Shown here: positions 10,426 to 45,870 of the stretch, in pieces
Layout of the letters: each line of letters opens with the position of its first letter
Position numbering within the stretch: the first letter of the stretch is position 1
From: Andalucia godoyi And28
Lineage: Eukaryota; Protista; Jakobida
Length of the DNA stretch: 64,000 bases
Assembly: GCA_009859145.1 (NCBI GenBank)
Contig: VRVR01000050.1
Span: forward strand, 173,448 to 237,447
Direction: 5' to 3'
Made by a program: the position numbers and the translations under genes
Notes under the pieces: model-generated
What the model was told of the DNA's origin: nothing
Database searches by the model: none
Seen by the model: the letters and a program-made list of their open reading frames with translations, nothing else

Positions 10426-10498
10426 GCCCCTGTAGCTTAGGCGGTAGAGCGCAACACTAGTAATGTTGAGGTCGTCGGTTCGATTCCGACCGGGGGCA
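10426..10498 (+). tRNA. tRNA-Thr(AGT)
   Basis: Cloverleaf: acceptor stem GCCCCTG/CGGGGGC, anticodon arm CAACA-CT-AGT-AA-TGTTG, T arm GTCGG-TTCGATT-CCGAC, discriminator A. Confidence 0.95.
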
Positions 10499-13377: not shown

Positions 13378-15063
13378 ATGGATGCGCGCCATAAAACAGA
13401 CAGTGCAAAAAATTCGGGTGGTTTCAGACCCATCAACAATTCCCGAATCGACCGTATGCATCCTGAATGGGACCGCGCGCTCCAGTCCCATCTCGACGGC
13501 CTCGTCGAAGAGTGCGATGACGAGAAGGAGCATGCGCAGCGGGTATCGGCTGCGCTGTCCTTTCTCCTCGCTGCCTCTTCCCCGTTTGTTTTCTCGTCGC
13601 TAGCATCAACTCCGAACCCGCGGCTAGCATCAATTCCCCTCGACAAGGACTGCGACGAGGACGACGGCGGCGCGGAGAGCGAGGCGCATGTGCACTACCT
13701 CGCGCACTGCTACACCCGCCGCGGCGCCTATCTGGTGCGCGCCCTTGCAGTCCTTCCTCGGGTGGCAGCAGCATCAAGTGATGCTACACGTGCACTGCTG
13801 GTGGATGCTTCTTCGATGATGTCGTGTCCCGGGCTGCCTGCTACTTTACAGTTTGCCCGTCTGTTTCATCCGCACGCAATGACTCTGCTGTACCACCCGT
13901 CCGCGGCCGATATTCTCATGGCTCTTGCGTCGCTCCTCGTGGCCCCTCCACCGCCGCTTCTCGCTCCTCTTGTGTCACCTGCGGCGTGGACGGTGGTGTG
14001 GATCGCGGCGACCGTGGACCGACACGTCTCGACGCATGCGCTGTCGCTGCATCCTGCATCGGCGTCGACGGAAGAAGCGGCTGGGGCTGGGGCTGGGGCT
14101 GGGGCGGGGGGTCGAGGGCGTGGACGGGCAATGGGGAAGGAGGGCGAGATGCTCTGGGTCGTGGGCGACTTGATGCCGTTTGCCCGTCGCGGAATGCCAA
14201 TGCTCGTTGTGCTTTCCACTCCGCTTTCCTCGGATCCGGTCTCGCTGACGCGTTCTTACAGCGATACCTGCTGCAATGACACGCGCAATTTCAATGACGC
14301 CGACAGCTACAACGCGCACAGCCAAGGTGGAGGTTTACGTGATGGCGCTGGCGGTAATGAAGATCGTGATGGGGGAGTGAGACGGACGAGAAGGAAAGAC
14401 GCAGAAGCAGCTGACGAGTGCTGCATGGTATGCATCCATGGCCCCGGCGATCTCTTTCCGGTCTTTCTGTCCAGTCCCTCACTCGCCCTCTCTCTCGTTC
14501 TCGATCCTCTTCACCACTCTTCTTCTACTCAATCCCAACCGCAGCACCGCAGACAGACGAAACGAGAGAGGGAGTCGCTCGAAGAAGTGCTCGAGGCCGA
14601 GCTTGAGCGTGTAGGCGCGTCGCTGGTGGTGCACTCTGAGCGCCACGTTTTAGACGCAGAGACGCAGGGCGTTGTTCGGGTGCTCCGTGGAGGCGGAACT
14701 GCATCCAGAGTGCTGTTGCGTGCGCTTTTCGCGGTGGCGTTTGCAAATGCTCATCGCGAACTGCGACGCTCCGTCATGCGGCTGCCGCATTCTCGATGGG
14801 GCATCACTGTCATTCACCATCACGATCCCACGTCCTCTTTCTCCTCCGCTACCACCGCTACCACCGTTATCTGCGCCTGCGCCTGCGCCTCCATCTCAAC
14901 ACCCGCCGCCACTACTTCCACGAGTTCTGCTAAGAGCAGGGGCAATGGTTCTTCGTTTTCGCTTGACGGGATGGAAAGGAAGCGATGGATCGAAGATCGA
15001 TTTGCGACGGCCGTTGATCTCGTGGTGGCCCACTTCCACGCGTCCGATCAGTTTGTCTTTTGA
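13378..15063 (+). CDS. Divergent SCAI-like protein
   Basis: LYHPSAADILMALASLL, GDLMPFARRGMPMLVV and GDLFPVFLSSPSLAL resemble three conserved SCAI blocks in the right order; low-complexity insertions between them. Confidence 0.5.
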   Translation: MDARHKTDSAKNSGGFRPINNSRIDRMHPEWDRALQSHLDGLVEECDDEKEHAQRVSAALSFLLAASSPFVFSSLASTPNPRLASIPLDKDCDEDDGGAESEAHVHYLAHCYTRRGAYLVRALAVLPRVAAASSDATRALLVDASSMMSCPGLPATLQFARLFHPHAMTLLYHPSAADILMALASLLVAPPPPLLAPLVSPAAWTVVWIAATVDRHVSTHALSLHPASASTEEAAGAGAGAGAGGRGRGRAMGKEGEMLWVVGDLMPFARRGMPMLVVLSTPLSSDPVSLTRSYSDTCCNDTRNFNDADSYNAHSQGGGLRDGAGGNEDRDGGVRRTRRKDAEAADECCMVCIHGPGDLFPVFLSSPSLALSLVLDPLHHSSSTQSQPQHRRQTKRERESLEEVLEAELERVGASLVVHSERHVLDAETQGVVRVLRGGGTASRVLLRALFAVAFANAHRELRRSVMRLPHSRWGITVIHHHDPTSSFSSATTATTVICACACASISTPAATTSTSSAKSRGNGSSFSLDGMERKRWIEDRFATAVDLVVAHFHASDQFVF

Positions 15064-16044: not shown

Positions 16045-16186
16045 TCTTTTTCTTTTTGCATTCTCTGCTTTGGTCTGTTCTTTGGAGTTTTTTTAGATAA
16101 TATTTATAAAAAAAGAAAAATAAAAACAAAAGGAAAAGTACAATAATCATTAAAGAAATGAAAAAAGGAAAAGTACTTTTTGAAAA

Positions 16187-18271
16187 ATGGTAAAGTTGGT
16201 GCTTGTGCGGTTGGTGGTACTTGTAGGAGTGCTTGCGTGTGTGGAGGGCGGGCTGGCTGTGTCGCAGGGTGATTTGCAGACGAGTGCGATGGCGGTGTGT
16301 GATGCACGTGGTCAAGCGGTGTCAGATCTTGTAGTTGCGTCCAACTCGTCGAATGTGCTTCGGTATGTGAAGTCCGTGTCGACGAATGGGACAATGACAA
16401 CGATCACGGTGACAGGGGCGAGTGGGCCTGCGTCTGCCGTGGTATGTGGGGACTTTCGGGCGCTTGGGTTCACAGACATTGCAGCGTACTTCCCGTCGAC
16501 TTCGTCCGTGTACATGATCAATGGCCTCACTTTTGCGGTGCTTGGGTCCATTGCACTGCCCAGCTCGTCGTTCAACTCCGCAGTGTCGATTGGTGCAGGC
16601 GATGTGAATGGCGATGGACTGATCGAGTTGGTTGTGGCGTCCGGTACTGCACATGTTGTGTCCGTCTACAATGGATCCAATTATGCGCTTCTGGACACGT
16701 ATTCTGTGTTTGGCGCACTTTCCGGAGGCCTCTCGCTCGATGTTGGCGACGTGAATGGCGATGCAGTGGCGGAAGTCATCGTTGGGCAAGTCTCTGGATT
16801 CGGAATCGAGGTGATGGTAGTCAATACCACGACTCATACAACTAGGCTGCTGGCGTCGACAACCGCGCAGTTCAAGTCAGGATCCGCCGCAACGGGTGTG
16901 CACGTCCGCGTGTGCGCGTCGCCAGCCAACACACCGGGATTTGTGGTTTACATGCCTTGGAACGCAGTAACCGCTGCAGATGTCGAGGTTCTCGGACGCA
17001 CGTTGCTGTTTTCTGCAGTTTCGACAGGCATCGCGTTTGCTGACCAGGTGTCCGTGCAAGTGAATGGAATCTCGCAGTTTCTTCGCTACCAACCATCATC
17101 TTCGCAGTTTCGGATCGTGATGGCTGCGTCGCAAATGTCATATGTCGAAGTGGCATCGACGGCGTTGGTGATTCCTCCGCCGGTTCTTCCTGCGTTTATC
17201 GCAGCGATTGAGAATATCGACGCGCTGTACGTGCGCTGCTCGGGGACAGAGACGACCCTCCTTGGGGGTGGTACATGGTACAGCGTCGTGCAGCCGCCGT
17301 GCATTGTGGCTCCTCAGCGCATCTACACATCACCGTACGTGCTGGCACTCCCGGACCTTGCGGCGGTGACGTTTGACTTTGCAGAGGGAGCACGCGGCAA
17401 CAAGAGCTTGTGGGGCTCCGTGCCATACTCGGATTGGTTCGTCCCGACAATTGTGGGGTCGTGGGGCCCGCAGCCGGCCGTGTTTTCGCCACCGGTGTCA
17501 ATTGCAGTCGTTTCCAAGAACACGACATGGATCCAAGAAAGGTACTTGGCCGTGATTTCGAGCCTTGTGGGATGGAATGTGTACCAGCACCACCACATAC
17601 CAGTGTGGGTGCCAAACTCGCAGGTGCACACATGGGCGGTTCCAGCGGTGCCGACGGGGGCCCACTTCTCGGGTCTCGACTGCTCGGACCTCACTTCCTG
17701 GGGATGGAACTATGGCTTTGGCCTCCACATGACTTCGCTGACTGCCGCCCAAGCTGCATTGCAGTCGGTTCCGTGTCCCTGGTGCACGACAAGCACTTCG
17801 AATGGGTCTGTGCTGTTCACGACCGTCGCGACTTCCGGCATTGCGTACTCGGATCTCGTAACCACGGTGCTCCAGCCGGGAGACATGCTGTACATCAAGG
17901 GCGAAGCCGCTGCAAGTGCACCCGTCACACACGTGCTATCATGGCTTGGAAACTACGCATCGTGCAAACGGCCGCAAGTCGTGGGCCCTTGTCCGCCGTT
18001 GATTCTCGATTCTCACGGACAGGTCGTCGTAGACTCGGTGGGAATCACAGTTCCTACTGGGCCGCACATCCGACCGTTTCTGGAGGATTCTTGGTACTTC
18101 CAATCGTTCAGCCATGCTGTGCGGCTCGTGGATGCCAACGGATTCACCATCAAGACCACTTCGCAGTCCAGCACCACATCCTCCAGCGCATTGTCGCCCA
18201 CCTCCACTCCCAATTCGTCCCTCCTGTTCCTCTTATTAGCACTCTTCATGTCGGCCGTCCTCTTCATATGA
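16187..18271 (+). CDS. Secreted, probably GPI-anchored FG-GAP-repeat + NlpC/P60-type cysteine peptidase
   Basis: Signal peptide; GDVNGDG repeats; YQHHHIPVW, GLDCSD (Cys 17681-17683), LQPGDMLY, VTHV (His 17930-17932); Ser/Thr spacer then a terminal hydrophobic tail. Confidence 0.75.
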   Translation: MVKLVLVRLVVLVGVLACVEGGLAVSQGDLQTSAMAVCDARGQAVSDLVVASNSSNVLRYVKSVSTNGTMTTITVTGASGPASAVVCGDFRALGFTDIAAYFPSTSSVYMINGLTFAVLGSIALPSSSFNSAVSIGAGDVNGDGLIELVVASGTAHVVSVYNGSNYALLDTYSVFGALSGGLSLDVGDVNGDAVAEVIVGQVSGFGIEVMVVNTTTHTTRLLASTTAQFKSGSAATGVHVRVCASPANTPGFVVYMPWNAVTAADVEVLGRTLLFSAVSTGIAFADQVSVQVNGISQFLRYQPSSSQFRIVMAASQMSYVEVASTALVIPPPVLPAFIAAIENIDALYVRCSGTETTLLGGGTWYSVVQPPCIVAPQRIYTSPYVLALPDLAAVTFDFAEGARGNKSLWGSVPYSDWFVPTIVGSWGPQPAVFSPPVSIAVVSKNTTWIQERYLAVISSLVGWNVYQHHHIPVWVPNSQVHTWAVPAVPTGAHFSGLDCSDLTSWGWNYGFGLHMTSLTAAQAALQSVPCPWCTTSTSNGSVLFTTVATSGIAYSDLVTTVLQPGDMLYIKGEAAASAPVTHVLSWLGNYASCKRPQVVGPCPPLILDSHGQVVVDSVGITVPTGPHIRPFLEDSWYFQSFSHAVRLVDANGFTIKTTSQSSTTSSSALSPTSTPNSSLLFLLLALFMSAVLFI

Positions 18272-18459
18272 GGTAAGCGACACTGTCCAATAAAAATAAG
18301 TAAATAAATGAGTACGGCACTGCACAGTGAGCAAAGATATTGGTCAATGCTGATTCATGACGTAAAACATACGCATTTCCACGATTTTCGTTTTCCATCT
18401 TTCCCGAAACCCCAACACACAATCCTCGTGTTTCTCAACAGCAAGAAAACAGCAGAAGA

Positions 18460-19767: not shown

Positions 19768-20027
19768 AAACCATGTTTTATATCTTGCAGGTTCCTGCTG
19801 TAGTCCTGTCCGAAAACCTCTTGTCTCAACCCGTTGATGCTCCATTGCCATGTGGCAAAGAGCAATCGAATGAAAATTTTAGATAAGGGAAACCTCGAAC
19901 TCCGTTTCATTTAATGCGTATTTTTCCTTTCGTTCCTTCTGTCTTTCTTTTTTTGGTTTTTCTCCACCATCTTTTTTGGGGCGTTTTAGTCGATAAAGAA
20001 AAGGTTGTGGGATTTTCTTCCTTGCGA

Positions 20028-21209
20028 ATGAGCCCAGCAGCCGTGTCCGCGAGTCTTGCGGCTCCTGTTTTGTCCTTTGACACTCCTCATGAAGACATGA
20101 TCCACGATGCACAGCTGGATTTCCATGCAAGAAAGCTTGCGACGGCGTCTTCGGATCGATCCATCCGCATTTTTGACGTGCCTGCTGCGTCTTCATCAAG
20201 TGCAGCAGCCGCAGCAGCTCCAGGATCGCTTAGGCCCGTCGCTGAAATCAGACAGGCACATGATGGACCCGTCTGGGCTGTTGCTTGGGCACACCCGCGC
20301 TTTGGGACGCTGCTGGCTTCGTGCTCTTATGATCGAAAAGTCAAGGTCTGGACACCTTCTCAACAACCAATCAACCAAAACCGTATGTCCGTTTCTTATT
20401 TCTTTCCTTCTTTTTTCTCCTTTGTTTTGTTGGGGTTGCTGTTTCATATGGATTTCTTCTCACTCATTGGTTCTTATCATTGACGTTCACGGCTTGGTGG
20501 CGTGTGTCTAGAGGGATCGAGTGGTGGTGGAATGATGAGTAACTGGGTGTGTGTTGCCGAGTACACACACAATGCAAGTGCCAATGCGGTTGCATTTGCG
20601 CCCCCCGATGCGTTCGCCGGGCCGGCGCTTGCATCTGTCGGATCGGATGGGGTTCTTTCGCTGGTCATCGCGACGCCCTCGTCCAGCGCACCGGGAGGCT
20701 ATGCGTGGCCATCGGCTGGAATCACTGTCGACACGCGGCATTCGGCGGCAACGTGTGTTTCATGGGCTCCATTCTCGGCCGCTGCAGCATCTTCCACGTC
20801 ATCGTCGCCGAATTCGAATGCGGTCCGCAGAATTGCGACGGGTGGGTGTGATAATCGTGTTCGGCTGTTCAAGTTTGATGGGGCGTCGAACTCGTTTGTT
20901 CCTGAGCGAGATCTTGTGGCACACTCGGACTGGGTCCGAGATGTAGCATTTGCGCCGTTTGCATATGCGCCGAATCGAGAAACACTCGTCTCGGCATCGC
21001 AGGACAAGTCGGTCGTTGTGTGGTCAATCGAAGCGGGAAAGGACGTCGAGCAAAAGGTGATCAATCTGGGTGCGGTTGTTTGGCGAGTCAGCTGGGGTGG
21101 CGTCGGCGGCGTTGTGGCAGCTACTTGTGCCGATGGACGAGTCGTCTTGTTGAGAGAAAACGCTGCCGGAGAATGGGTCAAGGTCGTCGAACAGGATGCC
21201 CAGGAATAG
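20028..21209 (+). CDS. SEC13: COPII/nucleoporin WD40 protein Sec13, 2 exons (20028-20382, 20512-21209)
   Basis: HEDMIHDAQLD, LATASSDRSIRIF, HDGPVWAVAWAHPRFG, HSDWVRDVAFAP, VWRVSW. The intron joins the two ORFs in frame. Confidence 0.93.
20383..20511 (+). other. Spliceosomal intron (129 nt)
   Basis: GTATGT donor, T-rich body, TTGAC branch-like site, CTAG acceptor; phase 1. Confidence 0.85.
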
Positions 21210-31389: not shown

Positions 31390-31624
31390 GTCTCTTCGTG
31401 GGGACTCAGTTCGTCATCGACTGTAGTGTACCGTTAAAAACACCCATCAAAGAAACATTCTCTCGATTTCAGCGGCTGTAGTAGGAGTTCGTTATTTGAG
31501 TATCTTTTGAATTTCAATTCCATTCAATAAATCCATTCATTTCGTTTTGCATTGTTTTCTTCGATTGTTTTCCTCGCTTAGTTTGCTTAATCTGTCTGTC
31601 TGTCTGTCTGTCTGCCTGCGAGGG

Positions 31625-33565
31625 ATGATAGTGGAAGCGACGTCGGAGGCCGCTCGTGCGCGCCTGAACGAGCTTTTTCTCCAGTGGCTTTCGCTCAGCG
31701 ACACCCAGAAGCTGGTTTCTGCGCTGTCGGAACATCTTCGAAATGGCGATCTATCGTCGTTTCTGACGTCACTCAAGAAACACGAAGATGACTCTCCATC
31801 TGCTCTGCTTCATCACATGGAATCATCATCATCATCATCGTCGTCGTCATCATCATCATCATCATCATCATCATCGTCGTCGTCGTCGTCGTTTAATTCT
31901 AATTCGAACATGGCACAGCCGCCGCCAAGATCGCCGAAACAGCCACTGGGAGGAGCTGTTTCTCCAGAACAGGCTCCTCAAAGGTCTCCATCGCTGCTTC
32001 CGTCATCGGCTGCTTCCGGAGCATATGAAAAGACACCGACAGCAACAGTAGCAGCCGACACGAGAGCCAGGATACCGGCGCTACCACTTTCCAATCGACC
32101 GCTTTCGCAAACTGAAATTGCCGCAGAGGAGAATGCGTTGAGGGACCTTGCGTCGAAGTTCCCGACTCCTGGTTCGTGGAACTCGCTGAATATTCGAGAC
32201 TTTTGCGCATTCGCCAAGGCAAATCTGCACCTCCCGTACTTCCTCTCGGCGGTCCTGTACGATTCCGTGGTCAGAAAGGGGAAGCTGGCGGAGTTCTACA
32301 AGACGAATCTGGCGAATGCGTCACCGAAATCACGAATCTACAGATGCCTTGTGCATGCAAAGGAGCTGTCGGATCGACCGTGGGTGGCAAAGTACTCTGC
32401 ATTGCTCCAGTCCGAAAAGCAAGGCCTGAAGCGAGCGGAAAAACCCGAGGATTTGCTGTTTTTCCAGGATTTTAATACGTTTTTAAAGTGCCTTGTCGCC
32501 TTACATCCGGCTCTGGCGTTCTTGGAGTCGACCCCGGAGTTCCAGGAGCGATATGTAGAGACGGTCCGCATGCGACTCTTTTTGGCGTACAATGCACGCG
32601 GAGGAGTCATCTCCGAGCGTGAATTCTTAGCTGCGTCGTCATCACAAAATAGCAAGCCGTTTTCCTCGCTTCTAGGTTCCAAGTCTGCAAATGCAAGCAA
32701 CAGCATCGGCAGCGGCAACATTGGCAACGGCGTATCGAAACAAAAGACCGGGCAGATCTCGGCGGATTTCCCAGCATGGGTTGAGCAACTCGATGACTCT
32801 ACCGATCTGTCTGCGATGACTCAGGTCTTTTCTTACGAGAATTTTTACGTGATTTACTGCAAGTTTTGGGAGTTGGATGCTGACCATGACCTGGTCATCT
32901 CAAGGGAGGAGCTCTCTCGGTATGCTGGCTATTCTTTGTCGAATAAGGCGATTGAGCAGGTCATGCGACAGATTCATCTTTTGCGATGCGCCCGCAATTT
33001 GGAGTCTAGAAAAAGCACTGGCATTCCCGGGATGCGGTCGACGAACAACTCGAGTCTACCGTGGGATGTCATGACGTACGATGACTTTGTGTGGTTTTGC
33101 ATCTGCGAAGAGGACAAGGCTGGCAGTGCTGCCGCGCTTGAATTTTGGTTCCGAGTGATTGACTTGGATGGGGATGGCATCGTGACAGCGTTTGAGATGG
33201 AGCACTTCTTTGGAGAGCAACGCAAACGGATGGAGGCATTGAGCCAAGAGGTCATTTCCTTTGACGACATTTATTGCCAGTTGCTGGACATGGTCAAACC
33301 GCGCGTTCAATCATCAATTACGCTGGCCGATCTGAAGCGGTCAGGCGTCCTGGCCCCTCTTTTTATCAACACCTTGACCAATCTGAACAAGTTTCTGGCG
33401 TGGGAGCAGCGCGATCCGTTCGCAGCTGCCGCTTCTCAGCAAGGCGACAGCGTGCCGCTCACCGAGTGGGATCGCTGGGCTCGAACCGAGTATGACCGAA
33501 TGTGCACGGATGCTGATCCTGGCGACCAGCAAGTAGACGATGTGTTGTCGTCCTGGGGGCAGTGA
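31625..33565 (+). CDS. PPP2R3: PP2A regulatory subunit B'' (PR72 family, EF-hand)
   Basis: LNELFLQWLS, HPALAFLESTPEFQERY, FSYENFYVIYCKFWELDADHD, EFWFRVIDLDGDG, WDRWARTEY. Confidence 0.92.
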   Translation: MIVEATSEAARARLNELFLQWLSLSDTQKLVSALSEHLRNGDLSSFLTSLKKHEDDSPSALLHHMESSSSSSSSSSSSSSSSSSSSSSSFNSNSNMAQPPPRSPKQPLGGAVSPEQAPQRSPSLLPSSAASGAYEKTPTATVAADTRARIPALPLSNRPLSQTEIAAEENALRDLASKFPTPGSWNSLNIRDFCAFAKANLHLPYFLSAVLYDSVVRKGKLAEFYKTNLANASPKSRIYRCLVHAKELSDRPWVAKYSALLQSEKQGLKRAEKPEDLLFFQDFNTFLKCLVALHPALAFLESTPEFQERYVETVRMRLFLAYNARGGVISEREFLAASSSQNSKPFSSLLGSKSANASNSIGSGNIGNGVSKQKTGQISADFPAWVEQLDDSTDLSAMTQVFSYENFYVIYCKFWELDADHDLVISREELSRYAGYSLSNKAIEQVMRQIHLLRCARNLESRKSTGIPGMRSTNNSSLPWDVMTYDDFVWFCICEEDKAGSAAALEFWFRVIDLDGDGIVTAFEMEHFFGEQRKRMEALSQEVISFDDIYCQLLDMVKPRVQSSITLADLKRSGVLAPLFINTLTNLNKFLAWEQRDPFAAAASQQGDSVPLTEWDRWARTEYDRMCTDADPGDQQVDDVLSSWGQ

Positions 33566-33858: not shown

Positions 33859-36800
33859 TCACAAGAACGGGATTCTCTCGGCCGTCCATTTTGAGACGAG
33901 CGAAAGCAGGTCGTTCTTCTTGCACGGTTTCAAGACAAGTGCGTTGAAATCGTCAAAGGATCCAGAGTGATCCGCAGAAAATTTAAGGACCTTGCAGCGT
34001 TCCACAGAAAGGTGAGAGAATTGGGGGTTCGAGGAAAGGTACGTCTGAATCACCGGGAAGATCTCGTTCTCAAGAGCACGAATGGTTTGAACAACCGCAG
34101 TGCCGCCCATCAACGGCATATTTTGGTCCAAAAGAACCACATCTGCGCCAAAGAAGCGCCGGAGAGCGCGGCTTACAGATAATTCATAGTCCAGTAAATC
34201 GGACTGGCTCCCTGAAGACGCAAGGCCGCTGTTGAGAAACGATTCGGCAGCGTCCTTCTTAACGTCTGGAGTGATCTTTGTGCGGAACTTGGACAGAGCG
34301 CTCCATTTTGGCACAGCAATGTCTTCACTGGATAATGAAGAAACGCTACGAAGTCTTGAAAGGAGTGTTTGCAACATCTGTTCGAGGGTCGATTCCAATT
34401 CAACACCCTGCGCATCGGGAAGAACGCCGCACTTGCCAAGAATGTACAGGTTGGCAGCCGCAGACTGTGCCATCCATATCAGGGCATCCCACCCATCGAC
34501 CATCTCGTGGCAGGAAAAGGAGTCGCGTTTCAGCAACTGAGCAGTGACACGCCTGCTTATGCGATCGTCATCAGCAAGCAGCACAACAGCATGTTCCCCA
34601 ACGGTCACTTGTGAAGAAGAAGAGGCCTCGGAAGTCACAGAGCTGTGGCTGAGAGGAAAGTAGGCATCATGTCCGGTCAAGTCTGGATCCGAGGTAAACG
34701 TGTTTTGCGGTGACGTCGTAGACGAAGGGACCGCGGAATCGCGCCGCAGACTAAATCGGACAAGTTTTTCCTTCCTCCCGCCAAAATCACCACCACCATC
34801 ACCATCACCATAAGCATCACTCGTTCTCGAATCGCTGTCTGAACTCGTTTGGCAGAGCATTTCTTCATTCGAAACAGACAGCTGGATGGATTCCACAGAC
34901 AGTCGCCGAGGTGACGGCTCCTGAGTGGCTACAGCTCTTTCCTGGCATATTCGGACCGCACGATACACATCGCATCGGCGGACCGGAACACTCAGACGAA
35001 CGATAGCCGCCTCTTGACTCGTACCCAACGTCGTTCCATTGATTGCCAATGGGTCATAGGTCGTTCGGATCCTTCTCGAAACCGGAAGGAGCACCATGCA
35101 CGTCAGCGGAGAATATCGGAACAATGCAGGCGACATTGTCCGCAAGAATCTGTAGGAAGCATCTGAAACAATCAAGAATGTCGGAGGACAGTACGCGGTG
35201 CCGTGTGCATACGGAGCGGCAGAATTACTAGAGGCAGAGGCAGAGGCAGCAGAAGCAGCCGCAGACGCGGAGGTAAAAGTGGATGTAGTCAAAAGCGACA
35301 AAGTAGGGGACGACGAATCGCACAACTGCTTCCACAGAGAGACGCACAGGTCAGTACTGCTTGAATTCAGCAGACCGGCACCGACGTTGTGCTTCAGCTT
35401 CTCTCGAGAAAAGACGAAACACTCCACTTGCGGAAGTCCCAAATCCGCAAGGTACTCCGCGGCGTTGCGTTCGAATTCAATTAGCGGTCCCAGTTCTGCT
35501 TCCGTCTCATCCAGAAGCATGAACGAGCGAGGAGCCTTCTCCAACAAAATATGAACAGGGTCCTCCATCTGTGTTGGGGAGAAGACAGTGTCGAATTCCG
35601 GGTTTTCGACCGAGTCAATGTTCACAAATACTCGGAATGTAGACCCGACGCCAAGCTTGGATTCAATCTCCATGTAGCCATCCATGAGCCTTACGAGCGA
35701 GTTGCAGATGAACAGCCCCAGGCCGGAGCCAGCAGTGCGACTATCATGTTGGGCCTGGGTCGATGAGAACTGCGCCCACTTCTGGAAGCTATGCATTTCA
35801 TCCAGCCGATTCTGCGGAATTCCTATTCCGGTGTCAATGACCTCAATCACGATTTCATACTGTGTAGAGGTCTGGCTGTTCATTCCCGTGCGCGGCACCG
35901 CACGAGCAGCACAGCGGACGGAAATAGACCCATTCCGCTTTGTAAATTTGATGGCATTGGACAGCAGATTCCACACAATCTGCTTGACACGGATCGGGTC
36001 GCCACGAAGAACTTGCGGACACGAACGGGAAACAAACGACGTAATCGATACTGAATGCTCGAGGGCGTTGCTCTTGAGCATATCGACCGCGTCTTCAATT
36101 ACATTGCACAACTCAAAGTCCACGTGGGAAAGGGACAGATTGCCGGCTTCCAACTTGCCTCGATCCAGCAGATCATTGATGAGAACAAATAAGATGTTGG
36201 AGGATTTCAAGATCGTTTCCACTAGTTCGACATGGTCTGGATCCATCTTTTCCGCGTCGTGAACAAGCAATTCCGAAGACGCAATCACAGCCCAAAGCGG
36301 AGTTCGAAGTTCATGCGTCAAGGAGTGCACAAGATCACGCATAGCAGCCGACTTTGCCTTTTCGAACGCAATTTCGCGAGAGGCACGTTCGGCCTCCAGC
36401 AACATTGTTTGGTCTCGAACTGCCGTGAGAGACACAATCCTCTGCTGAAACCCCTTATCGATTCGAGCTGCATCCATTGTGTCGGGAGGACACAAGTATG
36501 GAATCTCACGTGATACAGACATCGCCACGAACCTTCGAGCAGAAGACTCGCCACCAGTTTGCGACGGGAATGCCGTGCAGTCTACTCGCAGCTCAACAGG
36601 CTCTGTCACGATCTCTCTTGACGAACGCACATCCCCTTTCTGCAGACGCACGTCATCATTGCTGCGGGACGATTCAGGGTCCAAACATTCCAGGTCGTTT
36701 CCGGCATGCTGCGTGCCGTTTGGAGACTCGAGGGTTGAGGACTTCGAACCGGGCTGTTCACGAGACGCGTCCAGCATGGACTCGAGGAGGGAAGAAAAGT

Positions 36801-37641
36801 CTGCGCTTTCCACGACGCCTTCCGAGGGAGAATCGCCTGCGCCTTTTGAAATCAGCGGTGACAAGTACTTGTTGATCGGGCAACCTTCTACATCTTCTCT
36901 GCGGACGTTGAACGTCCGAAGAAATGTGTCGTTCACACGGATGATCCGTCCCTCGAAATGCACAACCAAGGGATCCACGGACGCTTGGAACAGCGCATCA
37001 AAGTTCGATTTCTCTCGTAGCAACTGCTGTCTCTCCACGTACCGTAGACCAGAAAACCCAGTCAAGACGAGGGCAATGAGAAGAAGCAAGAACATCAGCG
37101 AGAGGGACGATTGGAAAAGCATCACGTTCGTCGCATAGAAGATAATGACTTCGAGTAAAATGATGGAAAATGTGCACCACAAACCTCTGCTTCCAAACAA
37201 GAAAGCACTCATGATCAATGGGAAAACAAATGTTCTGCTAACCTGCTCTTCTTCTCGCCTTCTCCAATAGTCGGAGGGGTAGTCGTTGTCCTGGGCATAC
37301 AAGGAAATGACAAACGAGGTAGGAATAAAGATCACGGACAGGACCCACAGGTACTCGGACGGCAGCACGTATCCCAGCTTCGAGATGAAAAACACGACAA
37401 CGTTGAGAACCGAAAACGCTGCGTACAACAAAACGGGGAGCAGACAACAGGAGAACCCGGCGGCCAGAATTCCGATCGCAACGAAGAGGATCGAAACGGT
37501 CATAACGGTCCGGCACTTCCGCCGAAGAAATGCATCATCCACATGCGACGCAGGTCTTGTTAGCCATTCAAAGAACTGAAAGGTTCTCCACAGAACAACA
37601 TGGCGACAACATCCCGCATCCGGCCAAGGTTTTGGTTTCAT
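33859..37641 (-). CDS. Membrane-bound hybrid histidine kinase (TM region, PAS-like, HisKA, HATPase, receiver); 5' end uncertain
   Basis: THELRTP (H box), NLLSNAIKFT (N), DTGIGI (G1), GSGLGL (G2); receiver LLADDD...VLLDQNMP...KP; several N-terminal TM helices. Confidence 0.9.
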   Translation of the reverse strand: MKPKPWPDAGCCRHVVLWRTFQFFEWLTRPASHVDDAFLRRKCRTVMTVSILFVAIGILAAGFSCCLLPVLLYAAFSVLNVVVFFISKLGYVLPSEYLWVLSVIFIPTSFVISLYAQDNDYPSDYWRRREEEQVSRTFVFPLIMSAFLFGSRGLWCTFSIILLEVIIFYATNVMLFQSSLSLMFLLLLIALVLTGFSGLRYVERQQLLREKSNFDALFQASVDPLVVHFEGRIIRVNDTFLRTFNVRREDVEGCPINKYLSPLISKGAGDSPSEGVVESADFSSLLESMLDASREQPGSKSSTLESPNGTQHAGNDLECLDPESSRSNDDVRLQKGDVRSSREIVTEPVELRVDCTAFPSQTGGESSARRFVAMSVSREIPYLCPPDTMDAARIDKGFQQRIVSLTAVRDQTMLLEAERASREIAFEKAKSAAMRDLVHSLTHELRTPLWAVIASSELLVHDAEKMDPDHVELVETILKSSNILFVLINDLLDRGKLEAGNLSLSHVDFELCNVIEDAVDMLKSNALEHSVSITSFVSRSCPQVLRGDPIRVKQIVWNLLSNAIKFTKRNGSISVRCAARAVPRTGMNSQTSTQYEIVIEVIDTGIGIPQNRLDEMHSFQKWAQFSSTQAQHDSRTAGSGLGLFICNSLVRLMDGYMEIESKLGVGSTFRVFVNIDSVENPEFDTVFSPTQMEDPVHILLEKAPRSFMLLDETEAELGPLIEFERNAAEYLADLGLPQVECFVFSREKLKHNVGAGLLNSSSTDLCVSLWKQLCDSSSPTLSLLTTSTFTSASAAASAASASASSNSAAPYAHGTAYCPPTFLIVSDASYRFLRTMSPALFRYSPLTCMVLLPVSRRIRTTYDPLAINGTTLGTSQEAAIVRLSVPVRRCDVYRAVRICQERAVATQEPSPRRLSVESIQLSVSNEEMLCQTSSDSDSRTSDAYGDGDGGGDFGGRKEKLVRFSLRRDSAVPSSTTSPQNTFTSDPDLTGHDAYFPLSHSSVTSEASSSSQVTVGEHAVVLLADDDRISRRVTAQLLKRDSFSCHEMVDGWDALIWMAQSAAANLYILGKCGVLPDAQGVELESTLEQMLQTLLSRLRSVSSLSSEDIAVPKWSALSKFRTKITPDVKKDAAESFLNSGLASSGSQSDLLDYELSVSRALRRFFGADVVLLDQNMPLMGGTAVVQTIRALENEIFPVIQTYLSSNPQFSHLSVERCKVLKFSADHSGSFDDFNALVLKPCKKNDLLSLVSKWTAERIPFL

Positions 37642-38431
37642 CCTACACGGAAACCACACGCTTACACACACCAAGAAACAGGCTTCTTTTTTTTATAGAA
37701 TAGGGAAGGGCTTTGGGTCTTTGACTTGGAGAATTCCGTACATTAAATCATGAACGAGATGCAAACGCCAGACCAATAGAAAACAAAACGAACCCTAAAA
37801 CCGAGAATTTGCAGCGCAATAAGGGAAAGAAACACACAACTTGGGGGGTTCCTCCTATATATCGAGCGAGAATGACGTATGTACTTGCCTGAGGATGGGC
37901 GACAAAAGGGGAGAGTCGTGGGTGAGAGAGGCTTATCCTTGAGAGAAGACGGGCAAAGGAACAGGCACGAAGGGTATCTTTCGATTGGCCGAGTGAGCGA
38001 CGGGACTGCTCTCCACAGCATTTTTTTCCTGGAAAGCAGGGAAAGGTTCTGCAAGTTGATCCTGTTCTGCCTGCACAGCATTTCGTGGACTTGCCATGCA
38101 AGGCACGGAGTGTCGACGTAAACGGATTTGCTGCGACGTCTCTATTTATGGGAACTTCCATAACTTGACAGATGCAAGCAAAATCTTCAGCCAACCTCCG
38201 CCGTAGAAGTGCTGTCAAAGCTGCTGCTTCCAGACACGTTGCGACAAAGGCTTGAAACATCGTGACATGACCACCAGCTGCCTCCGCTTGACGTCACTTC
38301 GTGCAGCGTACCAGGGTGGATGCATCCTGCGTTCTCCGAGTTTCTATAAAATGGAGGGTTGCGCGGGGAAGACTTCGGCAAGAACGGAGCGGTACGGGGG
38401 GGTCTGTTTGGCGGCGAAACGCTATTTAACG

Positions 38432-44748: not shown

Positions 44749-45870
44749 ATGTCAACGGACGTCACAGCGCTTGTGATCGACAATGGGTCTGGAATGACCA
44801 AGGCTGGCTTTGCGGGCGACGACGCGCCTCGTGCTGCGGTTCCGGCGATTGTAGGCCGTCCGCGCTTCCAGAATGCAATGCTTGGAACGGGACAGAAAAA
44901 GCTCTATGTCGGGGAAGAGGCGCAGGCCAAGCGAGGAATCTTGTCAATGACCTATCCCATTGCGCACGGAATCGTCACAAACTGGGACGACATGTGCTCT
45001 GTGTGGCACCACGTGTTCTACAACGAACTTCGTGTGGATCCTTCCGAGCACCCAATCATGCTTACCGAAGCGCCTTTGAATCCAAAGATCAATCGCGAGA
45101 AGATGACGCAAATCATGTTCGAAACATTCAATGCCCCAAAGTTCTACGTCGCAATTCAAGCAGTGTTAGCCCTCTACTCTGCAGGTCGCACAACGGGTGT
45201 GGTGTTCGATGCCGGAGACGGAGTGTCGCACACGGTTCCGATCTACGAAGGGTTTGCGCTGCCGCATGCAGTCCAGCGCATCAATCTTGCAGGCCGTGAT
45301 CTCACCTACCAGCTGCAGCGCTTGCTGACAGAAAGCGGAATATCACTGACAAACTCTGCCGAGCTGGAGATCGTGCGTGACATCAAGGAAAAACTGTGTT
45401 ATGCTGCCATCGACTACGACGCCGAAATGCAGCGCCCGATCAGCGAGATTGAGAAACAGTACGATCTTCCGGACGGCACGAAAATCACTGTAGGAACGGA
45501 GCGCTTCCGCTGTGCAGAGACGCTGTTCCAGCCGCAGTTTATGGGTCTTGAGCCGCCGGGTGTCCACGAAGCACTGCACAACTCGATCCAGATCTGCGAC
45601 ATCGACATCCGTCGCGATCTGTACTCGAACATTGTCCTGTCCGGTGGCACAACCATGATCAGGGGATTCGCGGACCGCATGCACAAGGAAATGGCTCGCC
45701 TGGCACCGCCGGCCGTGCACACCAAAGTCATCGCGCCGGATGAACGCAAGTTTGCAGTGTGGATCGGTGGCTCCATTCTTGCGTCTCTTCAGACATTCGA
45801 ATCCATGTGGATCACTCGCCAGGAGTACGAAGAAGTCGGTCCGCAGATCGTTCATCGGCGCTGCATTTAA
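44749..45870 (+). CDS. ACT: Actin, divergent isoform
   Basis: 373 aa; [70 protein letters not shown]. Confidence 0.92.

Follow-up and report, generated by a model that had tools for sequence, protein, structure and literature searches.

How does a gene that joins FG-GAP repeats to an NlpC/P60-type peptidase domain come to lie among the genes of a protist, and what might its product do there? The gene in question occupies positions 16187..18271 (+) of a 64,000-nucleotide stretch of the jakobid Andalucia godoyi And28 (contig VRVR01000050.1, positions 173,448 to 237,447), which was analysed as a whole and is called the window below. A first-pass annotation, made from the letters and the open reading frames (ORFs) of the window, had proposed a bacteria-derived peptidoglycan hydrolase tethered to the cell surface. 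We hold with high confidence that the gene encodes a laterally acquired, secreted FG-GAP/NlpC-P60 enzyme. With moderate confidence we favor a fuller reading, in which this is a genuine eukaryotic gene whose ectodomain was taken as one unit from a bacterium and then fitted with eukaryotic targeting features, with the peptidoglycan stem peptide as the likely substrate.

Gene structure

The gene is a complete single-exon coding sequence, an uninterrupted ORF running from an ATG through 694 codons to a TGA stop, and it is present in one copy in the window. Because this one ORF spans the entire homologous architecture end to end, no introns are needed, and the description of the gene as intron-free holds, with residues 33-648 colinear with a bacterial homolog; the motifs and termini ascribed to the ORF were all found in it. 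Its 5' flank (16100..16186, +), read directly from the sequence, is A-rich with a eukaryote-like start context, AAAAATGG, and no Shine-Dalgarno sequence, and two AATAAA hexamers that are possible polyadenylation signals lie 18-32 nt past the stop codon (18289..18308, +). A chance match is excluded as the source of the similarities described below, given one homolog at E = 3e-130 and 34 matches to the family profile at E <= 1e-30.

Identity of the catalytic domain

When the protein is compared singly with the Pfam NLPC_P60 model (PF00877), the score of 11.8 bits (E = 0.24, residues 491-588) lies below the cut-off of 23, so that the label NlpC/P60 could not be secured in this way. Neither a single-sequence nor a two-sequence profile of the catalytic half matched any NlpC/P60 structure in the PDB, and NCBIfam scans returned nothing useful for the protein or for the domain family. 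In a word-indexed search of 5.8 billion proteins, the full-length query was dominated by FG-GAP matches and the C-terminal half found a single relative, the metagenomic protein P0002. An exhaustive HMMER search with the window protein and P0002 gathered 267 proteins at E <= 1e-3, 34 of them at E <= 1e-30, and their common unit is a domain of about 280 residues (query residues ~370-655).

It is through these intermediates that the domain can be placed. When the window domain segment and the 41 top matches were scanned against Pfam, 34 of these 42 members matched NLPC_P60 independently (E <= 0.01; best 2e-8; some past the cut-off). The bacterial members, of about 280-300 aa, are named at their source as 'NlpC/P60 family protein' or 'cell wall-associated NlpC family hydrolase', and nearly all of those listed carry precomputed PF00877 matches. 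A 40-sequence family profile searched against the PDB found Spr/MepS, Clostridioides difficile autolysins, the YkfC-like structure 3h41 and SagA, with the family motif G-x-D-C-S aligned on GIDCSGF of Spr and H-V-x-x-W-x-G on HVGIYIG. The AlphaFold2 (AF2) model of residues 370-664 has a predicted local distance difference test score (pLDDT) of 86.7 and a predicted template modeling score of 0.88, and in the full-length model the catalytic domain is confident at 380-657. Foldseek comparison of the domain model with the PDB gave 26 top matches that are all NlpC/P60 proteins, including Trichomonas NlpC1/NlpC2, with target-normalized template modeling scores up to 0.73. Because intermediates, motifs and fold agree, though the direct Pfam test fails, we regard it as established, on the grounds of profiles and predicted structure, that the C-terminal domain is a true papain-like peptidase of the NlpC/P60 superfamily. 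The earlier label thus stood as to superfamily, by way of the family profile and the fold.

The papain-like core spans residues 496-657 (17672..18157, +), as delimited from the weak Pfam match, the family profile and Foldseek. Its predicted nucleophile, Cys499 (17681..17683, +), is found in the motif G-L-D-C-S at the N-terminus of helix 499-511, and the predicted general base, His582 (17930..17932, +), in T-H-V-L-S-W-L-G on strand 580-586. Both had been read as intact, in a DCS motif (residues 498-500) and a THV motif (residues 581-583), and both fall in family-wide conserved columns: among 65 full-length domains aligned, the cysteine is kept in 60 and the histidine in all 65. The predicted third residue, Asp608 (18008..18010, +), in L-I-L-D-S-H-G on strand 605-610, is kept in 63 of the 65; we infer its role from its place in the strand that follows the histidine strand of the model, and the alternative candidate, His610, is variable. 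A cysteine at the N-terminus of a helix, with the polar residues in successive strands, is the arrangement described for Trichomonas NlpC_A1 (PMC6299479). Since Cys499 precedes His582, the domain belongs to the canonical (P60-like / AcmB-like) branch, and a permuted family of the LRAT/YaeF type is ruled out.

An extended subfamily

At about 280 aa, the catalytic domain is roughly double a canonical NlpC/P60 domain in size. Ahead of the core lies an N-terminal extension specific to the subfamily (residues 378-495; 17318..17671, +), which is mostly confident in the AF2 model and is marked by Y380-x-S-P-Y384, W426-G-P428, R452 and Y466-Q-H-H-H470. These columns are conserved in 52-65 of the 65 members and in all four eukaryote-type members, namely the window protein and three metagenomic relatives considered below. 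The triplet His468-His469-His470 (17588..17596, +) is nearly invariant in the family alignment; that it binds a metal or the substrate is a guess. Among the members scanned, no Pfam or NCBIfam model covers the extension, and no solved structure among the PDB matches obtained by profile and Foldseek includes it. Searches of the PDB and the literature found no characterized member of the extended subfamily, and the literature search returned no paper linking NlpC with FG-GAP.

Using an alignment of seven sequences, we confirmed 164 loci with the domain in GTDB species representatives, mainly of Planctomycetota, Verrucomicrobiota, Melainabacteria/Obscuribacterales and Xenobia, with scattered cases in Desulfovibrio, Chitinophaga and others. 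Comparison of 80 bacterial loci revealed no conserved neighborhood that might hint at a function; nothing recurred there but the gene and shadow ORFs in GC-rich sequence. One metagenomic bacterial protein of 825 aa (P0054) has a Spi-type inhibitor prodomain and a streptopain-like Peptidase C10 domain fused to the extended NlpC/P60 domain, and so carries two different cysteine peptidases in one chain.

The FG-GAP propeller and the linker

The N-terminal region (residues ~32-257; 16280..16957, +) is identified as an FG-GAP beta-propeller by Pfam, by sequence matching to the PDB, by AF2 and by Foldseek. The annotation had spoken of GDVNGDG repeats, and the protein does have GDVNGD twice, at residues 138 and 187, together with matches to both Pfam FG-GAP profiles past their cut-offs (FG-GAP_3, 39.5 bits against 26.9; FG-GAP, 22.6 bits against 22.1). 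Both motifs fit the integrin-type Ca-loop pattern D-x-N-x-D-[GA]-x-x-E. The first Ca-binding-loop-like motif, DVNGDGLIE (residues 139-147; 16601..16627, +), aligns on DFNGDGIDD of integrin alpha-V, which the propeller region matches by sequence in the PDB, and the second, DVNGDAVAE (residues 188-196; 16748..16774, +), aligns on DINGDDYAD of the same protein. In the second motif, which starts at residue 188, an alanine replaces the glycine of the pattern, and metal binding is predicted from the sequence pattern only.

In the full-length AlphaFold model (pLDDT 71.5), four regular four-stranded blades (32-225) are followed by a weaker fifth (238-257). Foldseek of the N-terminal part found beta-propellers, including integrin alpha subunits and ITFG2, with 230-385 columns aligned, and the closest sequence relatives of the FG-GAP repeats are bacterial. 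A poorly modeled linker (residues 258-377; 16958..17317, +; pLDDT < 50), which may hold further degenerate blades, leads to the catalytic half. It is kept in P0002 and in a second metagenomic relative, P0027, is colinear with the corresponding part of a Paludisphaera protein, and carries a Cys351/Cys372 pair that it shares with P0002. A Pfam match to TcdB_toxin_midN stayed below threshold (13.5 bits, cut-off 24.8); matches like it go along with FG-GAP/VCBS repeats in bacterial proteins, and it was taken as noise.

Predicted signal sequence, stalk and hydrophobic tail

At the N-terminus, MVKLVLVRLVVLVGVLACVEGGLA, the Kyte-Doolittle mean is 2.63 over residues 1-19 and pLDDT is below 50 across residues 1-27. 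Such a hydrophobic, poorly modeled start fits a cleavable signal peptide, predicted here for residues 1 to ~24 (16187..16258, +), in agreement with the first reading of the sequence.

The C-terminus reads TSQSSTTSSSALSPTSTPNSS and then LLFLLLALFMSAVLFI-stop, with zero residues beyond the hydrophobic stretch. Residues 658-678 (18158..18220, +) form a Ser/Thr-rich stalk with small residues that are candidate omega sites; it is predicted to be disordered (pLDDT < 50 at 659-678) and is not present in the bacterial homologs. The last 16 residues, LLFLLLALFMSAVLFI (18221..18268, +), make up a hydrophobic tail (hydrophobicity 2.28; modeled helix 676-693) that resembles a glycosylphosphatidylinositol (GPI) attachment signal. 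A GPI-signal-like tail had been claimed, and a Ser/Thr stretch followed by a terminal hydrophobic stretch, GPI-like by sequence, is indeed what the end of the protein offers. This end, ...SSSALSPTSTPNSS + LLFLLLALFMSAVLFI-stop, is also compatible with a tail anchor. Comparable hydrophobic tails are present in P0002 and P0027 and in none of the bacterial relatives.

Bacterial relatives and probable origin

The fusion of FG-GAP repeats with an extended NlpC/P60 domain occurs in at least seven further proteins, where it is accompanied by modules typical of bacteria (PKD, DUF4214, SdrD_B and a pro-kumamolisin activation domain). Two of the seven could be assigned to named bacteria, WP_076349249.1 (684 aa) to Paludisphaera borealis and WP_110376316.1 to Chelatococcus asaccharovorans. 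The bacterial fusion proteins have planctomycete-type 'LE-x-LE-x-R' N-termini and end at the catalytic domain. Residues 33-648 of the window protein align with residues 39-682 of WP_076349249.1 in one colinear alignment (E = 7e-37, 27% identity), and this colinearity indicates inheritance of propeller, linker and peptidase as a unit. The architecture, which the first-pass annotation did not recognize from eukaryotes, is therefore not new to biology, since it exists in bacteria; what has been added to it are trimmings of a eukaryotic type.

Three close relatives, all metagenomic, were found in the databases searched: P0002, a fragment that is 56% identical in the C-terminal half and has a hydrophobic tail at its end, P0027 and P0036. 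Eukaryote-style signal sequences are seen in the window protein and P0036, and hydrophobic C-terminal tails in the window protein, P0002 and P0027. All four members share a Cys-containing insertion (Cys593/Cys602), and their density of Cys and N-x-S/T is about twice that of bacterial members. Judged from the sequences, the eukaryote-type additions are thus a predicted signal peptide, extra cysteines, a Ser/Thr stalk and a hydrophobic tail. Because the triad and every conserved residue of the extension are kept in all four eukaryote-type members at 36-60% identity, the comparison speaks for an enzyme that is active and under constraint.

In a neighbor-joining tree of 145 domains (200 bootstraps), the four eukaryote-type members form one clade (136/200), in which the window protein pairs with P0002 (199/200). 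The clade lies among bacterial sequences, beside multi-domain FG-GAP proteins, and its exact sister is weakly supported. In the databases searched, the eukaryotic distribution is sparse, with four eukaryote-type sequences against 164 bacterial GTDB loci. Since the relatives are overwhelmingly bacterial, lateral acquisition from bacteria is the parsimonious reading of these sequences, with planctomycete-type proteins as the closest named architecture. The bacterial derivation proposed at the outset is supported by this predominance, by the nesting of the clade among bacteria and by the colinear Paludisphaera homolog; the profile search and phylogeny that it called for recovered an NlpC/P60 family and placed the domain within bacterial diversity.

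A metagenome scan found no further eukaryote-type close relatives. A segment of L091 with 52% identity was set aside as a eukaryote-type relative, its contig being frameshifted, 67% GC and probably bacterial. On another contig (L002, Logan SRR15116022, 3141-5235), the P0027 gene extends beyond its called limits: upstream of it lies an ORF with homology to the N-terminus of the window protein, and a 1-nt frameshift near ~3440 joins the two. The split is thus not an intron, and the frameshift is either an assembly error or a mark of a pseudogene. The same contig terminates in a (GA)n microsatellite. P0036 (L003, Logan DRR438522, 2862-4991) has a signal peptide, degenerate FG-GAP repeats and a Cys-rich C-terminal module of ~60 residues; because this module stands in place of the tail, anchoring differs within the clade.

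Eukaryotic setting of the locus

The window also holds genes for a histone deacetylase, MOR2/PAG1 (Furry), WD40 proteins, an acyl-CoA dehydrogenase, actin, dynamin, symplekin, a CH-domain protein, an anoctamin/TMEM63-like channel and a hybrid histidine kinase. The next gene downstream (19914-21209, +) encodes a Sec13/Seh1-like WD40 protein and has a 129-nt GT-AG intron (20383-20511, GTATGT donor), the removal of which leaves one ORF of 388 aa. Introns are apparently rare in the window, and most genes are long single ORFs. The codon usage of our gene correlates with that of its pooled neighbors at r = 0.71 (relative synonymous codon usage), inside the range of the neighbors themselves (0.61-0.91). 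Contamination had been thought unlikely because of the flanking eukaryotic genes, and these, the intron next door and the codon usage all speak for that judgment.

EukProt records seven of the nine window proteins compared, one of them also being in NCBI, and all are singletons at 90% identity, which points to a sparsely sampled lineage; the other two are absent from the collection. The actin (44749-45870, +; Pfam Actin E = 1e-133) stands alone at 90% identity in a collection of 15 billion proteins. This is seldom the case with actins and suggests that the lineage is divergent and sparsely sampled; in-frame sequence upstream of it encodes a (Thr-Ala)n repeat. The hybrid histidine kinase (33859-37674, -; 1271 aa, with HisKA, HATPase_c and response-regulator receiver domains) is a sensor of the two-component type in a eukaryotic context. 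A tRNA-Thr (AGT) at 10426-10498 (+) is the sole Rfam or ARAGORN match in the window. The ORFs at 31547-33565 (+) and 13378-15063 (+) contain long stretches that are homopolymeric or of low complexity, such as poly-Ser and Gly-Ala repeats, and the 561-aa ORF directly upstream of our gene has no Pfam match.

Proposed function and alternative explanations

We propose that the signal peptide would direct the protein to the endoplasmic reticulum, where the extra cysteines could form disulfides and up to eight N-x-S/T sequons could be glycosylated. The hydrophobic tail would then be exchanged for a GPI anchor, or else serve as a membrane anchor, and the enzyme would stand atop its Ser/Thr-rich stalk on the cell surface or in the lumen of the phagosome. 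There the propeller, with its two Ca-loop-like motifs, may bind a ligand, while the papain-like triad Cys499-His582-Asp608, predicted from motif, conservation and fold, would cleave an amide bond in a substrate groove that the YQHHH-bearing extension probably shapes. Characterized NlpC/P60 enzymes cleave amide bonds of the peptidoglycan stem peptide (PMC6299479, PMC4967989), and by analogy the substrate would most likely be the stem peptide of bacteria that the cell meets, cut at gamma-D-Glu-diamino acid or at N-acetylmuramic acid-L-Ala. We give this choice of substrate somewhat better than an even chance, and a role in prey capture or lysis less than that.

Several observations weigh against this reading. 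The window protein falls short of the Pfam NLPC_P60 cut-off, only four to five blades of the propeller are modeled with confidence, and residues 260-377 are of low confidence. Instead of a GPI signal, the tail might simply anchor the C-terminus in the membrane, and P0036, a member of the same clade, ends in a Cys-rich module without a hydrophobic tail. The GC content at third codon positions (GC3) is 0.649, at the top of the 14 window genes compared (others 0.48-0.62); a remnant of foreign composition or a bias tied to expression might account for this. The phylogeny is a neighbor-joining tree alone, with moderate support for the clade and weak support for its bacterial sister, and the substrate is assumed from distant relatives, the identity to solved structures being 13-16%.

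A bolder version would make the eukaryote-type members a GPI-tethered 'capture-and-cut' clade, in which a Ca-dependent propeller docks onto bacterial envelopes and the NlpC/P60 domain cuts the wall, the subfamily having a bond specificity or regulation that is undescribed for NlpC/P60 enzymes of bacteria and eukaryotes alike; we entertain this tentatively, as a possibility that is on the whole improbable.

Among the competing explanations, a specificity other than peptidoglycan would make the extended subfamily a new class, in bacteria as well as in this eukaryote, acting on poly-gamma-glutamate or gamma-glutamyl amides or on an acyl or lipid substrate, or working as a peptide amidase. The superfamily is biochemically diverse according to Anantharaman and Aravind 2003, as cited in PMC4967989, and a domain of twice the canonical size, with an invariant extension whose three histidines are without counterpart in characterized enzymes, might have departed from the usual substrate. 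The low identity to solved structures (11-16%) and the lack of a conserved cell-wall gene neighborhood in the 80 bacterial loci would agree with such a departure. We nevertheless consider it rather unlikely, as the top structural matches are without exception peptidases of peptidoglycan or murein peptides, the order of Cys before His rules out the permuted LRAT/YaeF acyltransferase branches, and all the bacterial hosts make peptidoglycan.

It is likewise doubtful that a protein of the same make-up and origin remodels or sheds parts of the wall, scales, matrix or glycoprotein coat of its own cell, or serves adhesion between cells or to a substrate by means of its integrin-like propeller, and does not act on bacterial peptidoglycan. 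GPI-anchored proteins with Ser/Thr stalks are classic components of walls and surface coats, FG-GAP propellers serve as adhesion modules in integrins, and bacterial NlpC/P60 enzymes mostly remodel the wall of their own cell, several members looking lipoprotein-like or periplasmic by their N-termini. Against this, the documented precedents target bacteria (PMC6299479, PMC4967989), and free-living protists are not known to have a substrate of their own that contains a gamma-glutamyl or D-amino-acid amide bond. The catalytic domain and its groove extension also match the bacterial enzymes residue for residue, which argues for an unchanged substrate.

That the protein is a catalytically dead adhesin, with the peptidase domain kept as a binding module, is very improbable: pseudo-enzymes are common among laterally acquired surface proteins and the window protein scores under the Pfam cut-off, but Cys499, His582, Asp608 and the groove residues are intact in four of four eukaryote-type members despite their divergence. 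Bacterial contamination or a chimeric assembly, which the bacterial nature of the nearest named relatives and a GC3 slightly above that of the neighbors might suggest, can be dismissed as extremely improbable, given eukaryotic genes within 1-2 kb on both sides (one with a GT-AG intron), a codon usage correlation inside the range of the neighbors, the A-rich start context and AATAAA hexamers past the stop, an identity to any bacterial protein of at most ~39%, and bacterial homologs that are without the GPI-like tail, the Ser/Thr stalk and the extra cysteines.

Comparison with known systems

The enzyme that we favor, a laterally acquired and predicted surface-bound hydrolase of bacterial peptidoglycan, would have precedent, as laterally acquired, surface-located NlpC/P60 peptidoglycan hydrolases are already known in protists (PMC6299479, PMC4967989). 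NlpC_A1 and NlpC_A2 of Trichomonas vaginalis are laterally acquired DL-endopeptidases with solved structures (PDB 6biq, 6bim) and demonstrated activity (PMC6299479), and they rank 8 and 23 in the Foldseek results for our domain model. Like the window protein, they are eukaryotic proteins of bacterial origin in which an accessory binding domain precedes a C-terminal NlpC/P60 domain, and they carry a signal peptide, such as is predicted for the window protein. A papain-like triad with the Cys at the N-terminus of a helix, in the window protein a predicted one, is common to both systems, and the Trichomonas enzymes are surface-associated, as is predicted for the window protein. They differ in the accessory module, which is an FG-GAP propeller in the window protein and two SH3b domains in Trichomonas, and in the third triad residue, which is a predicted Asp in the former and His in the latter. 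The window domain also comes from another subfamily, the extended one (~280 aa, YQHHH), and the GPI-like tail and Ser/Thr stalk are without parallel in the Trichomonas proteins.

Among bacterial enzymes, E. coli MepS/Spr and the gamma-D-Glu-diamino-acid endopeptidases of the YkfC / dipeptidyl-peptidase VI type (2k1g, 8xud, 3h41, 4r0k) align in core fold and Cys/His motifs, with 3h41 the best structural match. They are only 11-16% identical, however, have SH3b or no accessory domains and a His as third residue, and are without the extension of ~115 residues that carries YQHHH. Much closer are single-domain proteins of ~280-300 aa from Planctomycetota, Verrucomicrobiota (Chthoniobacterales, Prosthecobacter), Melainabacteria/Obscuribacterales, Xenobia and Desulfovibrio sp. 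DV, which are 29-40% identical to the window domain over > 90% of its length and have all signature residues in common; they are secreted or of the lipoprotein type and have no propeller. The propeller itself shares with those of integrin alpha and ITFG-type proteins the FG-GAP repeats with D-x-N-x-D-G-x-x-[DE] loops, but unlike integrin alpha it shows no sign of a beta-subunit partner, and four to five of its blades are confident.

The uptake of genes for bacterial wall hydrolases, seen in Trichomonas and Trepomonas, is beginning to emerge as one of the ways in which protists feed on bacteria or compete with them. The present case would widen this picture on three counts: what was transferred is an entire bacterial surface protein with two modules, propeller and peptidase, and not a lone catalytic domain; the catalytic domain comes from a widespread bacterial subfamily with hundreds of members in Planctomycetota, Verrucomicrobiota and Melainabacteria; and the eukaryotic copies bear what may be called a 'domestication kit' of signal peptide, disulfide cysteines, Ser/Thr stalk and GPI-like tail. 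Once the enzyme is characterized, a large bacterial family would gain a function, and it would become clear whether bacteriolysis by a membrane-tethered enzyme occurs beyond the parabasalids. The case is solid and somewhat unexpected, and it is no conceptual surprise.

The closest comparison is with Paludisphaera WP_076349249.1 and its kin from Planctomycetota, Chelatococcus and metagenomes, which have the same architecture from N- to C-terminus, nearly equal length and the same catalytic and extension residues, and which differ in being without the Ser/Thr stalk, the hydrophobic tail and the clade-specific cysteines of the window protein. By sequence, the true family of the window protein is that of the FG-GAP/extended-NlpC-P60 proteins of Planctomycetota and their allies. 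The acquisition of NlpC/P60 hydrolases by protists is known; what is new is the FG-GAP architecture in a protist, the extended subfamily and the predicted tethering.

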